A stretch of 62,206 nt of DNA, counting the filler, from Choristocarpus tenellus KU-1152 (Eukaryota; Protista; Phaeophyceae), in NCBI GenBank assembly GCA_964200185.2. It is 10 parts of 10 records of this genome, joined end to end, with 100 filler letters (N's around TTAATTAATTAA, not from the genome) between each part and the next. Parts side by side here need not be neighbours in the genome. Positions count along the whole stretch, not along the records: positions 4,545 to 11,320 come from CAXNAD020007374.1; 9 more parts are not named here. One strand, written 5' to 3'. The notes beneath the pieces are model-generated. The model did no database searches. It was given only the letters and a program-made list of their open reading frames with translations, and was not told the origin of the DNA. Below are positions 4,545-11,753 of this stretch, one piece after another. Each line of letters begins with the position of its first letter. The first letter of the stretch is position 1. The translations under genes and the position numbers were made by a program.

Positions 4545-6430
4545 AGGGTAAAGATGATCAACCTGGATAGATTGCTTGGTGTCTGTAGAGTATTTGATTA
4601 AATTTAGGTGGGGCATGCAAGGCCCCATAAAATCATACCACTAATTGATTGTTCCATTAGTCCATACATATTTTACCGTAACTGTCCGATAGAGTTGGTA
4701 GAGTCTAATCGAACACGCGCTGTGAGTCAGCAGCCCATGCAGCTCATAGCTCCAGAGATGAAATTGTGCGACATGTACTGCTCGTCATTGGAGGACACCG
4801 CAGATTTTGTCATTCGTCTCGATCATATCTGGACATTAGTACGAGCAGCTGGAGGCAGCCAAGATCATGCCAAGAAAGGAGCTCTGATAGGCATCAGGGA
4901 CAGCATGCCACAAGTATTTGCACGGATGTGTCCGTGTGGAGGACGAGATCCCCATGCAGCTTGACAAAGGACGCACGGAGGATGAGATCCCTGTGCAGCT
5001 CACCGGAAGTCGCGCAGCCTTGTGTTTCCTGCTGGGACAGGCCACAAAAGGGGGGCCGCAGCAACGGTGATCAGTACTCATGAGAGTATCAGCAGCCCTG
5101 ATGGAGGGCTGCCTGGCTCGAATTAGAGTCAGAAAAGGAAAAAAACAGAGGAGGCTTGTAAGCAAAGGGCTGCCTGCACAAGACTTGCTGCTTGTGCTGA
5201 GAAGCCTGCAGGGTAGACCAGGTACTCAGAGCACATCCTGGAACAACTATGGAGATTAAGGACACCTTCAGATCGTTTGTTGCCAGAGGAGAGCGACACT
5301 GTCTAGAAAAGTTGGTGACCTCAGCACAGGTGACTTTTCAGTCTGAAGCCAAACTGCTGGAGTTAGTGGGGGAGCCAGGTCTGGACATACTTAGGGAGTT
5401 AGAGGTTCCTGATGGCCGCACTGTCAAGGCAGAGAACGCAATCTATGGGCTGAAGCAGTCAGCAATGGAATGGCAACATGAACTACGAAACATTATTTTA
5501 GCAGAAGGGTGGACAAGCAGTCAACACGACGAGTGCTTCTACTTCAAGAAGAGTGAAGACGGACGCATCGCCATCCTTACTACCTATGTGGACGACACTG
5601 TCACCACTGGGGAATTCACAGAGGAAATCCAGAGGATGAGGGTATCACTGCTGGAGAAGTGCGAGGGGCGGGACCTAGGTACGCCAGACAAGCTTATTGA
5701 GGTGGGCATCACTGTGGGTGAGGACGGAATCACCCTGGACCAACAGATGCAGATAAGTGGCAGGAGACCATGGAGAAGGAAATGACAGAATTATGGAAGG
5801 AGACGTGTGGCATTAAGTATATTCCAACACGCAAGCAATTTGGCAAACGTGTTAATCAAGTTTTTACGCAAGAATTTCATCTCTGATTTTGTGCATTCTG
5901 TGCTTTCGCATTGAGACTGAGCTGTAGTCAGCAACTTTGCTGCACGCTCATGGGGGAGTGTGCAATATAGGCTGGTAATCTATATCGCTTATACGTGTTT
6001 AGTGACCACTGCTAGACAACAGGAATGTTGACTTAGTGGAACAAGTGTCACTGACTTTTTTACCTGTGCTTAGAGTCATAAGTTCGAATATCAGATTATT
6101 CGATTCTTATTACCCGATATTGAAGGATTGACGGAGGATTACTGACATATTACTAGATCTAGATACACAGGAAAAGTGACATAGTACGACCAACGGCAAG
6201 GCATTTTCGATGTGTCAGCTGATGTGCCAGTACGACCAACGGCAAGACACTTTTTGATGTGTCAGCTGATGTGCCAACTGACGCGTGCAATAAGAAACAA
6301 GAGAGAGCATCCCCACCTCAAGGGATAGTGCTCACTTCGCTATTAAATACACCCATACAACACAATGCAAAGACTATTGGAATAGCTTTTTTTTGCATAC
6401 ATAGTACCTCAATAGAAGTAGTAGAGATTT
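4545..6430 (+). mobile_element. Decayed, internally deleted Ty1/copia LTR retrotransposon (gag remnant, RT remnant, PPT, 3' LTR)
   Basis: ORF 5249-5785 has copia RT motifs AIYGLKQSAMEW, DECFY, TYVDD; gag-like remnant 4740-5060; RNase H tail YIPT near 5820; PPT GGGGGAG 5952-5958 followed by TG. LTR end not determined. Confidence 0.85.
6183..6276 (+). repeat. Two tandem copies of a 46-47 bp unit inside the copia LTR
   Basis: AGTACGACCAACGGCAAG...GATGTGTCAGCTGATGTGCC repeated twice. Confidence 0.9.
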
Positions 6431-9040
6431 GCTCAGTTTCTTGGAAAGTGATGTTTTGATCGTTGTATTATGTTCGTAATAGTATGTAACTAGTACTGTT
6501 AGATTAACTCAAAATTTCTTCATGTAGTCGATTATAATCCAAGTGCATATGCAGGGGACAAATTGAATGAGGAGTGCAAGCCACCGAGCTCTGTGATAAT
6601 AGCACCCAATGCACCTTTGGGTGAAGAATATTGATTCAACATCACTCCACAAATTTCCGGTTCAGGTCATATTCGTCTTCTTCAATCAAATCGTATTGAT
6701 TCAACCACTACGATTCACAAACCTATACTAGTGAGTGTAAAAATATCATAACAACAATATCGACGATTTATGGTAGTACCAAGTTGTAGCGAAATAGTGG
6801 TCAAAATGGGTACCACGTATCCTTCTTCCAACATCAGTGTATAAATTTCGATACTGTTAAAGGACACATACGGTACTTGTTTCAAGACATCACATTCTCC
6901 AAGACTGCTGAACGTTGTCCCTCTATGGTTGAGGATGGTAGAAGTATAGTACTTTACATTAACCCAATGTGGTACATCCTACCTGCTATAGGGCATCAGA
7001 AAGAGTGAGGCAAGGGAATTGGACAATAGCACCAGTCATCAGCTAGAATGTTGCAAACAAGGTAATCAAGCCTAGACTGAAAGAGTGGAAGCCAGGACAG
7101 GGCCAAACAACTACTTCAGTGTCCACCAGCTCCAGGAGGAAACAAAAGGTATTGCTGAATTTGGAGCAGGTATTCCTTGGGAGCCTTGCCCACACAGGCT
7201 CTACTACAAAGACATGCACTTATGCATTAAGTCATCACATCAAAGCTTGAATATTTGCATAAACATTTTGTACATTGTGAGTGTTCAACCTGCCTGGGAT
7301 GACTGTACCTTTTATGAAAAATGAACACTTGAGATGGAGGCCATGACAGACAAAGGTATGGTGTAGAAGGAAGAGGCAACACAAGCATCAATCGATCCAT
7401 GGGTAAGAGGAAGATGAATAAAGTATGCACACGGTGTCTTGGGCAACATACACCAATTGTGAGTTGGTAGAACATTGATTCAGGTGTGTGTGATTCTGTT
7501 GGTTGGTTGCTATATCACGTGGATGAAGTCGGACTGCTGCATACCCTGAACAAGGTCGGAACATTTTGGTGTCTTGTACCATCTATTCAAGTTGATGGTG
7601 CAGTGACAGGTATTTGGAAGTACAGTTGTTAGGAAGGCAAGGAACCAATTCGATTCTCAACATGGAGGGTCATGATGCACCTGTAACATGTATGGTCTTC
7701 ATATCACTCCCAGTGAAACATGTTGTTCCACAGTGGTCACACAAGCCAACAGACAGGTGAGTAAAGCAACATGAGATGAACACTGCCTGCATGGAACTGT
7801 CACGCTCCTTCTATCATTGCCAACAGCATACAACATGAACAATAATCACACCCACCCCAAAGGTGTGGACGTTTTGCGTAGTCCACGATGAATGGTATTT
7901 GGAAACCACACAAGTAACACAAGAAAGAGAGTGTAATTGTACTGACCGTGATGCTGAGTTGTAGAGCCACCTTTCAGTGAAGAAAGAACATCACAGGAGG
8001 TATGATGTAAAGTCGTTTAAGAGATACATCATCCAATAGATACGAAAAAGGCCACATGCTTGTCTAGGGGAAAATTATTTTCGATAAAATTGAATCAGCC
8101 TTTGTGTACTTCTCAACGTAGTCATTCTTCGGTTCACCACCGGTGAAACAGCCAGTAAAATCCTTGTCACAGTCAACTGTGATGTCCTGGAAGATTGTGT
8201 GACTAATTCATCTAACAGTCACCCTTATGCCAGATGGCAACAACCCATCCATCTACAACGTAGATAAAATTCTGAAGTCATTCCTTTAAGGCTTGTCAGT
8301 CACCTCCACCCTGGGATGTTTTGATCAAAATACTTACCTCAATCCTATCCCTTTGAGTCCAGTTGGTCGCTCCATCCGTGAAATGTCTTGACTAATGTGA
8401 TGATTTCCAAAATGTAAACTCAAGGAGTCCTGTCGACCAACCTACCCTGAAATATCCCAATTAAGGAACTCTCCAAGACCCATATACGCTGGAGTCCTGC
8501 CCACCAACTCATCTCTGAAACCTCTCCATCAAACTGATTCAGAAATTTCAACACATGAAATGTGCCTGACCAAGTCACCCCTTCAATATCATTTTCAAAG
8601 AATGCTCCTACAGGTTGTTCCTGGAGACTGTTATTTGTGTTAGTGTGGAAGAAGAGAAAAGAAAGAGGGAGCCTCACACAATTCCCCCTACCTGAACGTG
8701 ATGAGGTGATTGAAAAGAGGAGTGATAAAATTAGAGATGGTGAGGCTTGACTGAGCACCATTTTCTTCCAGAAGGAATCACTGAAACTCAACACTTACAA
8801 CGCTTCTAGAATACCCCATCAAGATATAGAATTAGAAAGTCTCGAACAAGTGGATTTCAAAACCCAGAATTGATTCTCCATAATATTTCCCTAAGATAAG
8901 AAATATGAACCGGAATGCTTTCGGTTACATAGTACTGTAATTCATGCATACATATGATATTTTCCACAATAATACGCCCATCTAACCTCAGCCACTTCCT
9001 GATCTATGTCATATCCAAAAGCTTGGCTGAGGTATTCTGC

Positions 9041-10909
9041 TCAATACCCTGCCCACCAATACTCATCCGCTTCCTCTGACAACCCATCCTCATCTTCCTC
9101 CTCCCCATCTAATTCATGTCCAAGGGTCAGCTTGAACTCAGACGGTCCCACTATTCCATCGACTGTCCGGTTGAACATACATCCAAGCATGAGTTCTCGG
9201 AGGCGTTCAGGCCACCTAACCTCACCCAAAGGCTGATCGAAGTAATATCCAAAGGTCAGCTGCTTGAGCTCAGTAGGCTACACTACTCCATTCACTGGAT
9301 GTTTGACCTTAGATCCAAAAGCAAGCTGTCGAAGCTCAGAAGGCCACTTCACTCCATCAACTGCTTGATTGAACCAAGTGCCAAACCTCAGCACCTGCAG
9401 CCCGGTTGGCCACTGTACCTCATCCACTGCCTGATTGAACATAATCCCAAAGGTCAGCACCTGCAGCCCCGTTGGCCATGCTACTCCATTTACTGGCTGG
9501 TTGAAATCCCATCCAAAAACAAGATGTCGAAGCCCAGAAGGCCACTTCACTCTGTCAACTGCTTGATCGAAACAATCGCCAAACCTTAGCACCTGCAGCC
9601 CCATTGGCCACTGTACTTCATCCACTGCCTGATTGAAGTTACGCCCAAAGGTCAGCACCTGCAGCCCCGTTGGCCACGCTACTCCATTTACTGGCTGATT
9701 GAAAAACCATCCAAAAATAAGCTGTCTCAGCCCAGAAGGCCACTTCATTCCGTCAACTGCTTGATTGAAATAATCGCCAAACCTCAGCACCTGCAGCCCC
9801 GTTGGCCACTGTGCCTCATCCACTGCCTGATTGAAGACCACTCCAAAGGTCAGTTCCTTGAGCTCAGCCGGCCACGCTACTCCATTTACTGGCTGGTTGA
9901 ACACACCTCGAAAATCAAGCTGTTGAAGCCCGGAAGGCCACTTAACTCCGTCAACTGGTTGATTGAAGTAATGGCCGAACCTCAGCACCTGCAGCCCTGT
10001 TGGCCACTGTACCTCATCCACTGCCTGATTGAACTCACCTCCAAAGGTCAGTTCCTTGAGCTCAGCCGGCCATGCTACTCCATTTACTGGCTGATTGAAT
10101 ATCCGTCCAAGATCAAGCTGTTGAATCCCAGACGGCCACTTCACTCCATTTATTGACTGGTTGACCATCCGTCCAAGATCAAGCTGTCGAAGCCCAGAAG
10201 GCCACTTCACTCCATCAACTGCTTGATTGAAACCACCGCCAAACCTCAGCACCTGCAGCCCCGTTGGCCACTGTACCTCATCCACTGCCAGATTGAAATG
10301 ATCTCCAAAGGTCAGCTGCTTGAGCTCAGTGGGTCAAGATACTCCATTTACTGGCTGGTTGAACCTATTTCCAAAATCAAGCCGTCGAAGCCCAGAAGGC
10401 CACTTCACTCCATCAACTGCTTGATTGAAACAATGGCCGAACCTCAGCACCTGCAGCCCCGTTGGCCACTGTACCTCATCCACTGCCTGATTGAAGCCAT
10501 CACCGAAGGCTAACGGTTGGAGTCGTGACGGCCACAATACGCTATCTAGTGTCCCGTGGAATCGCTCAACATATCTCAGCTGTGGGATACCAGTGGGCAA
10601 ACCAACAATGGTCAAAGTCTGCCTTTGGTTGGAGAACAAGGCCAGTTCGTCGAGATCCCACTTCAGTCCATTCACACAAAGAGCAGGAATACGTGATGCT
10701 CGATTGCTCTTCCTCCCCCGCAGTAGTCCGAAACTTGCCAGGATTCCAGGGGGAGTATCCAACTCAACCTTCACATGAAACCCCACCCTCTGGCGACACT
10801 CATTGCAGATGGCTAAACTGGTCAATTGAAGGTGATTGATACGCCCAGCCCGAATAAAGCCAGAACTAGCCACGAGGCCTAGGACGAAATGGCACTGTTC
10901 TCTCGGCAT
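9041..10909 (-). pseudogene. Intronless FNIP-repeat (22-aa LRR-like) gene with 21 repeats and two in-frame stops (TGA 10334-10336, TAG 9278-9280); pseudogene or recoded gene
   Basis: ORFs 10334-10972, 9278-10285 and 9041-9229 share one frame; repeat consensus WPxxLxxLxFGxxFNQxVxxVx; first in-frame ATG at 10909; acidic C-terminal tail. Confidence 0.85.
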
Positions 10910-11753
10910 GCCTTGAGTATGTTTTGGGACAAGACTGGGTGGTGGGTCCCTTTTTTGGGTGGATGGGTTCACATTGAATGCAGGTTATGATATTTTTGAA
11001 TGAGTATTCAAACTTCCTATAAACTTTTCAATAATACAAAATAATATTAATTGTTTGTACCATATACATGCTGTGCTGATGCATGGATGGACCAATAGAC
11101 GGTTTGATTCTTCATGGTTTGATTGGTAGATTGATAGATTGTCAGATAGATTTGATGTATGAATGAAGTACAATGATATACTATTTTATATTATTATGCC
11201 CTCTGACATTTTGCAGATGTGTCAGGGGGAATCCAATGAAAACTATATACACATGTGTGAATCGTTTGATTCTGTGGCGGCGTGGTTCACTCAGGCAAGG
11301 GTGATGAAGAGAATCACCGGNNNNNNNNNNNNNNNNNNNNNNNNNNNNNNNNNNNNNNNNNNNNTTAATTAATTAANNNNNNNNNNNNNNNNNNNNNNNN
11401 NNNNNNNNNNNNNNNNNNNNGTCGTGTGAGGCTTCACACCTTCTTATCTTCACTACTAACAAATAGCATTACCTCCCAAGGTAATTTGCACAGTTCTAGA
11501 TAAATACGACTTCAAGCGTAAGGGTCGCAGGTCCAATCTTTCAGTCATAATCAGATGGATGAGTCACGGCAAGGGACCGAGGAGCTCCACCATCTTCTAG
11601 GAAAATGTTCACACTCCTATCATACATACACCTCAACTGAAAACTGTCGTATGTTGAGTGTAACGGAATCCGATCTCTGCTACCTAGACTAATACTGATG
11701 AAGAAATCTTGAGAAAAGGAAGAGAAAAGAGATGTGCATGCCCTTTTGCCAAT

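Follow-up and report, generated by a model that had tools for sequence, protein, structure and literature searches.

The window analyzed here is a stretch of 62,206 nucleotides from the brown alga Choristocarpus tenellus KU-1152 (assembly GCA_964200185.2), in which 10 parts of 10 records are joined end to end. At positions 9041 to 10909 of its minus strand it contains an intronless gene for tandem FNIP repeats, each of which carries two adjacent residues, the xx of the motif FGxxFN, that differ from one repeat to the next. We consider that this gene is probably a pseudogenised member of the FGxxFN leucine-rich-repeat (LRR) class, in whose own subfamily the xx pair was diversified by ordinary mutation and diversifying selection before the copy died. 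Within this subfamily, nonsynonymous divergence at xx exceeds that of synonymous or non-coding sites 3- to 9-fold, which fits diversifying selection. The feature sits in the part at 4545–11320 (contig C7374), and the assembly amounts to 164 Mb in 27,310 contigs.

Anatomy of the gene and family membership

The features of the gene are the following, together with the N-terminal module of its intact paralog L002 (contig C6755).

9041–10909, minus strand: intronless FNIP/FGxxFN LRR gene, best read as now a pseudogene; ATG at 10907–10909, terminal TGA at 9041–9043, single reading frame
10571–10909, minus strand: N-terminal module of about 90 to 110 residues, seen in alignments A1 and A2
9176–10561, minus strand: 21 tandem FNIP units, each of 66 nt, with subtypes A, B and C arranged as a 198-nt super-repeat
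10496-66(n-1) to 10561-66(n-1), minus strand: unit n
9176–10501, minus strand: the 21 hypervariable xx codon pairs, each the last 6 nt of its unit in reading direction
10496-66(n-1) to 10501-66(n-1), minus strand: xx pair of unit n, the first at 10496–10501 (DG) and the last at 9176–9181 (CM)
10334–10336, minus strand: TGA stop in frame, in place of the WP motif's Trp codon in unit 4
9278–9280, minus strand: TAG stop in frame, in place of the WP motif's Trp codon in unit 20
9110–9175, minus strand: degenerate 22nd unit, with a partial match (3 bits) to the hidden Markov model (HMM) of the unit
9044–9109, minus strand: acidic C-terminal tail
L002:820–1146: N-terminal module of the intact paralog, also carried by about 20 other loci

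Frame translation showed a single minus-strand frame from 10972 to 9041, in which the start codon at 10907–10909 was placed by colinearity with L002. From 10561 down to 9176, the 21 units each have exactly 22 residues (66 nt), with zero indels. Tandem Repeats Finder gave a period of 198 nt for the array (85% matches, 0% indels), and therefore three 66-nt subtypes alternate: subtype A (units 2, 5, 9, 12, 15, 18), subtype B (units 3, 6, 7, 10, 13, 16, 19) and subtype C (units 4, 8, 11, 14, 17, 20). Conservation among units 2–20 was high at F1, N2 and W10 (17/19 each), P11 and L17 (19/19 each) and G20 (18/19). The unit HMM scan found no significant FNIP unit 3′ of the stop of the gene, at 8420–9040.

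The tandem 22-residue units fit the LxxLxFGxxFNQ..(W/L/I)Pxx consensus of FNIP/FGxxFN LRRs. The Pfam family FNIP (PF05725) matched 9281–10333 of the minus strand with a score of 135.3 bits (E 7.3e-40; cut-off 21), and the 351-residue open piece matched the solved structures of Crov588 (6nyr_A, E 5.8e-134) and Crov539 (7zal, E 7.2e-57), with the FG-xx-FN columns in register, column for column. Judged by sequence homology, the region is thus a member of the FNIP/FGxxFN LRR class, of the WP subclass like Crov539. This class was named "FGxxFN LRR proteins" from the solved Crov588 and Crov539 structures, in which the two xx residues are the most variable ones and stand on the edge of the concave face, as a probable binding site; the same authors likened the FGxxFN repertoire to lamprey variable lymphocyte receptors (VLRs) and counted 104 Ectocarpus sequences, mostly of WP type (Huyton et al., 2022; PMC9525666). 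Other studies reported 121 FNIP proteins in Saccharina (PMC4421812) and noted virophage FNIP genes as a hypervariable region (PMC10945749). Since both the variability of xx and its reading as a binding surface are published for the family, the pattern in itself is no discovery. A rate excess over neutral at xx is, as far as our searches reach, not reported in the FNIP repeat literature. In the genome of C. tenellus, a six-frame search gave 105 matches to the family on many contigs, many of them in open frames of 300–900 residues, and all FNIP genes examined lack introns. The exact-protein look-up of the intact paralog L002 returned no record.

The sequence-only reading of this DNA had described the array and its repeats, which are real, but the two in-frame stops had gone unremarked. 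The frame is broken twice, each time at the Trp codon of a WP motif (TGG to TGA, TGG to TAG), and in the colinear comparisons of the window gene the ratio of nonsynonymous to synonymous divergence (dN/dS) outside xx is about 0.6–1.0. A pseudogene is thus the best reading of this copy. L003, L006, L018 and L022, its sister copies, are broken too, several of them at a codon of this Trp type and L022 by a frameshift; the C6755 gene (L002) is intact, with an open frame of 629 residues. Apart from this gene, the whole young subfamily looks largely dead.

Rapid change of the xx pair in one subfamily

The 21 xx pairs are exactly those listed in the sequence-only reading, and all of them differ. Also, units 2, 5, 9 and 18 do have the same 16 residues around HC, GG, HY and TW, as it had pointed out. 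Per-position entropy bears out the focus of this diversity on two codons of a conserved scaffold: among units 2–20, amino-acid entropy reached 3.29 and 3.68 bits at xx and at most 2.19 bits at every other position. The count of 21 different pairs out of 21, although true, is unremarkable, as pairs drawn at random from the frequencies of the whole family give it with a probability between 0.18 (empirical pairs) and 0.39 (independent residues), and many paralogs likewise have all-distinct pairs. Family-wide, in 340 units from 25 paralog open reading frames, entropy was 4.10 and 4.01 bits at xx, for a maximum of 4.32, and the next highest values were 3.40 bits at position 12 and 3.19 bits at position 9.

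Rates were obtained as Nei-Gojobori counts, with bootstrap and independent pairs, from the proportions of synonymous (pS) and nonsynonymous (pN) differences. Comparisons were made within subtypes, where synonymous sites are unsaturated. In the window gene, scaffold pS was 0.12 for subtype A, 0.20 for B and 0.31 for C, and scaffold pN was 0.02–0.12, for xx pN values of 0.50 (A), 0.71 (B) and 0.73 (C). Seven loci share the A/B/C super-repeat and constitute the subfamily (contigs C7374, C6755, C16360, C9478, C12690, C14883 and C7541). Over its 81 units, the ratio of xx pN to scaffold pS was 2.9 (A), 5.2 (B) and 2.5 (C), with bootstrap lower bounds above 2, and 40 independent nearest-neighbour pairs gave an xx pN of 0.531, for a scaffold pS of 0.123 and a scaffold pN of 0.071 (Fisher P 8e-29). 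After xx, replacements in subtypes A and B were most frequent at position 18. It corresponds to position 5 of the published numbering, where the only variable residue of the concave face is placed (PMC9525666).

A cleaner test was provided by a colinear set of five paralogs, compared over 63 nt of upstream non-coding DNA, the N-terminal module and the first six units. The 63 nt before the start codon (10910–10972) are 82–90% identical among the closest paralogs (L022, L003, L018); therefore the duplications carried the 5′ flank, which was used as a non-coding neutral yardstick. For the closest colinear trio, the proportion of differences (p) was 0.11–0.18 in this upstream DNA, pS was 0.06–0.15 in the N-terminal module and 0.10–0.19 in the scaffold, and xx pN was 0.38–0.55. 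The corresponding Jukes-Cantor-corrected rate ratio (omega) at xx was 3.0–8.8.

Several points weigh against this reading. The rates are counts by the Nei-Gojobori method. The positional homology of units past the first few is uncertain. Recombination between paralogs and the closer relationship of A units within a gene mean that homogenisation of the scaffold could inflate the ratio. The stops and the order of units are as in the assembly: the reads were available from four runs of one study as Logan unitigs of 100–250 nt which cover parts of the stretch only, and such short unitigs could not confirm them. Finally, pairs of intact paralogs in other subfamilies gave omega values of 0.13–1.2 at xx. 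Between L021 and L026, a single xx residue out of 18 is different for a scaffold pS of 0.15, L010 gave an omega of about 0.5–0.6 against L021 or L026, L008 and L011 gave 0.6–0.75, and older pairs are saturated near 1. In these intact subfamilies xx outpaces the scaffold, without exceeding the rate of synonymous sites. The rate excess is therefore local, and positive selection is indicated only in the subfamily of the window gene. Family-wide, the xx are therefore the least constrained sites. The positive selection proposed from the sequence alone is thus indicated for this subfamily, and gives way to rates at or below neutral in the intact members of the others.

Exchange of DNA between paralogs does occur. 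The N-terminal module of L026 (C7116) is like that of L010 (C17973), with a pS of 0.32, and its array is near that of L021 (C9007), with a scaffold pS of 0.15; the N-terminal modules of L021 and L026 have a pS of 0.59. Recombination or conversion between paralogs moves whole arrays.

This L026 mosaic, as a case of real inter-paralog recombination, is one of the grounds for explaining the data by concerted evolution, in which neutral and unconstrained xx would keep old diversity as conversion or unequal crossing-over homogenises the 60-nt scaffold, including its synonymous sites. Such a process would agree with the low omega of intact pairs elsewhere, with A units of the window gene that are 4.7% apart but 9.0% from those of L002, and with unitigs from three runs that skip about 264 nt, the length of four units. 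However, conversion between units cannot homogenise DNA outside the array, and yet divergence in the flank and the N-terminal module is 0.06–0.18 against 0.38–0.55 at xx. Moreover, in the sole exchange seen, the xx moved together with the scaffold (17/18 identical between L021 and L026); conversion therefore does not spare the xx, and diverse xx under homogenisation would itself need selection. Also, when the window gene was compared by blastn with the 29 further FNIP loci retrieved, no tract reached both 95% identity and 60 nt. We therefore regard concerted evolution as an unlikely explanation. Much less probable still is a targeted mechanism that writes the xx, such as hypermutation, cassette conversion from pseudogene arrays or somatic assembly of the VLR type, one of the origins that the sequence-only reading had proposed. 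It would account for the very sharp island of variation (6 nt at p 0.47, with flanks at about 0.11), and the subfamily does contain several broken arrays with at least one intact gene, and a reverse-transcriptase fragment lies 3.3 kb away. That fragment, however, is a Ty1/copia RVT_2 piece of a decayed retrotransposon, and the mutation spectrum at xx is ordinary. All four bases occur at the variable xx bases of the subfamily units, and the transition/transversion ratio is 1.04 at xx for 1.06 in the scaffold. The third base of codon 21 is kept and subtype-specific (T in 22/26 units of subtype A, G in 17/26 of subtype B, T in 24/29 of subtype C), for a nucleotide diversity (pi) of 0.60–0.77 at bases 1 and 2 of the same codon. 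The xx codons are also inherited: identical ones are common to paralogs (HC as CATTGT, GG as GGTGGT, YY as TATTAC, RM as CGGATG), close intact paralogs retain 17/18 xx residues, colinear copies are separated by steps of one base in units 1 and 2, and the blastn comparison offers no donor tract of high identity. The combination of a base-specific pattern and a donor, expected of a diversity-generating retroelement or another targeted mutator, was not found.

The comparison of xx with the repeat variable di-residues (RVDs) of transcription activator-like effectors (TALEs), also made from the sequence alone, led us to consider a code in which every repeat would recognise a single polymer unit, for example a DNA or RNA base, via its di-residue. 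The resemblance is formal only, in that near-identical repeats differ at two adjacent residues. TALE RVDs comprise a handful of pairs. Here, 176 distinct pairs occur in 340 units and the effective number is about 200, near the 15.9 × 15.2 of two near-uniform positions; because about 200 effective pairs from a near-random alphabet are used, this is not a small code of the TALE kind. Also, the fold is by homology a 22-residue LRR solenoid and not a helical TALE repeat, and Pfam scans found no nucleic-acid-binding domain or signal. Neither the helical repeats of 33–35 residues nor the small coding alphabet that define TALEs are what the gene encodes, and we give such a code practically no credence. 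Diversifying selection on ordinary mutations, followed by the death of the copy, is the probable explanation that we retain.

Two further observations concern exchange and variation within the array. The four pairs HC, HY, DC and DY all occur in A units (2, 9, 12 and 15) whose scaffolds are about 5% different, and this four-gamete pattern across adjacent codons implies recurrent mutation or exchange between units. In unitigs of three runs, position 9902 was joined to 10172, so that 269 nt were missing and 5 other letters stood in their place, and in one run 10265 was joined to 10530, skipping 264 nt, that is 4 units. These joints are either shorter variants of the array or paralogs.

The N-terminal module

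Upstream of the array, the gene and its relatives carry a module with the motif CxxCR, FH shortly after, and SRVPxLR further on. In 23 sequences of the genome (alignment A1), G17, C35, C38 and R39 are invariant and R73 and P75 nearly so; in an alignment of 40 sequences with brown-algal homologues (A2), C35, C38, R39 and P75 are invariant and L27 and R73 nearly so. Pfam gave no hit on ten N-terminal modules, F-box included, at E up to 1, and a word search with residues 1–125 of L002 returned nothing. A profile of the module, searched against 1.84 billion representatives, found 564 cluster representatives at E ≤1e-3, with the module always near the N-terminus; the long hits which were scanned carry FNIP repeats only (10/10), and the named hits are the brown algae Scytosiphon, Ectocarpus and Nemacystus.

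The AlphaFold2 (AF2) model of the module reached a mean predicted local distance difference test score (pLDDT) of 58 with 23 sequences and 76.8 with 40 sequences. The latter model has helices at 3–15 and 21–41, a strand at 44–48, a helix at 54–59 and a strand at 79–84. No fold match was obtained for it, the best E being 1.1 in Foldseek against the PDB and Z remaining below 3 in the wide comparison with VIA-align. The second half of the module probably caps the solenoid. In language-model feature space, the neighbours of the module included viral F-box+FNIP and F-box clusters at 0.81–0.86; these values are below the meaningful level of 0.9, and therefore an F-box reading was not adopted. A role of proteins with this module as adaptors of SCF (Skp1-cullin-F-box) ubiquitin ligases is possible.

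Proposed function and comparison with known systems

In the mechanism that we favor, each 22-residue unit would be one turn of a beta-solenoid, the core of which would consist of the conserved residues L, F, G, F, N, W and P. By in-register homology to 6NYR and 7ZAL, xx corresponds to positions 8–9 of the published FGxxFN repeat. The two residues would thus face outward along the concave face's edge, and successive units would align them into one ridge, which most likely would contact a protein ligand. This geometry is taken from homology to the solved structures; the binding of a ligand and the cellular role of the window gene are inferred. As the xx would carry specificity and not the fold, they would for that reason be the least constrained sites of the family. 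In recent duplicates of the subfamily, they were replaced faster than neutral sites, as fits ordinary point mutation together with selection that diversified the specificity of binding, in a family under gene birth and death, and the window copy appears to have died since, as its two stops and the relaxed constraint on its scaffold indicate. A diversified recognition surface had also been proposed from the sequence alone. The focused and fast-changing xx and their position by homology on the concave edge speak for it, but this reading was already published for the family.

That xx was replaced at 3 to 9 times the neutral rate in one young subfamily at least is in support of the published conjecture that these residues determine binding specificity. 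The present analysis adds to the known family the reading of this copy as a pseudogene, a rate excess that is specific to its subfamily and comes with an ordinary mutation spectrum, and an undescribed N-terminal module. This conserved module, missing from Pfam, is the best handle on what the FNIP family does. The rate excess, its absence from other subfamilies and the module are of modest value. More broadly, and only as a tentative suggestion that we hold to be more doubtful than the preceding reading, the WP-type FGxxFN proteins with N-terminal module of xanthophytes and brown algae might form a germline recognition repertoire, immune-like or antiviral, in which subfamilies would undergo bursts of positive selection on the xx and then become pseudogenes; the N-terminal module would be a novel domain for adaptor or signalling functions, perhaps a very divergent F-box.

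The gene shares with the FNIP/FGxxFN LRRs (PF05725; 6NYR, 7ZAL) the 22-residue LxxLxFGxxFNQ...WPxx repeat, of the WP subclass as in Crov539 and most Ectocarpus sequences, together with the highest variability at xx and a family that is large within one genome. It differs from them as a host gene of a stramenopile alga, and not of a giant virus or Dictyostelium, and by a module outside Pfam, a strict super-repeat of three subtypes, its pseudogene status and a measured rate excess at xx. Among the brown-algal FNIP expansions, proteins of Ectocarpus, Scytosiphon, Choristocarpus and Nemacystus combine the same WP repeats with the N-terminal module, but identity is only about 35–46% in the repeats and 20–37% in the module. 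An Arp2 gene from the same assembly has its best named relatives in a cluster with Vaucheria litorea (83% identity) and in Triparma (77%), followed by a pelagophyte (73%) and oomycetes (about 70%); judged by this gene, the host would be a stramenopile alga close to the xanthophytes and brown algae, but not itself a brown alga.

The LRR-ROCO and NB-ARC-TPR candidate receptors of Ectocarpus (Zambounis et al., 2012; PMC3341825) are comparable in their rapid birth and death and in the positively selected residues of their concave face, and these repeat families were read as fast-evolving recognition modules. However, they have one exon per repeat, undergo exon shuffling and are fused to a GTPase or NB-ARC domain, whereas the window family is intronless and has FGxxFN repeats with the N-terminal module as only partner. 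The giant-virus F-box+FNIP proteins, which are SCF substrate adaptors, also have an N-terminal helical module followed by FNIP repeats; unlike them, the ten modules examined here gave no Pfam F-box at E up to 1, and no structural match was obtained. With the TALE RVDs, the likeness is one of pattern only, tandem repeats that are almost the same apart from a varying di-residue, and the fold, repeat length and alphabet (about 200 effective pairs here versus a handful) are different.

Elsewhere in the same part of the window, an AT-rich spacer at 6183–6276 contains two tandem copies of a 47-nt unit with 93% match, which suggested no function. A fragment of Ty1/copia reverse transcriptase (RVT_2, E 3.1e-11) lies at 5249–5785 of the plus strand amid broken open reading frames. 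It is the decayed retrotransposon located 3.3 kb from the FNIP pseudogene, and it is unrelated to the variability of the array.

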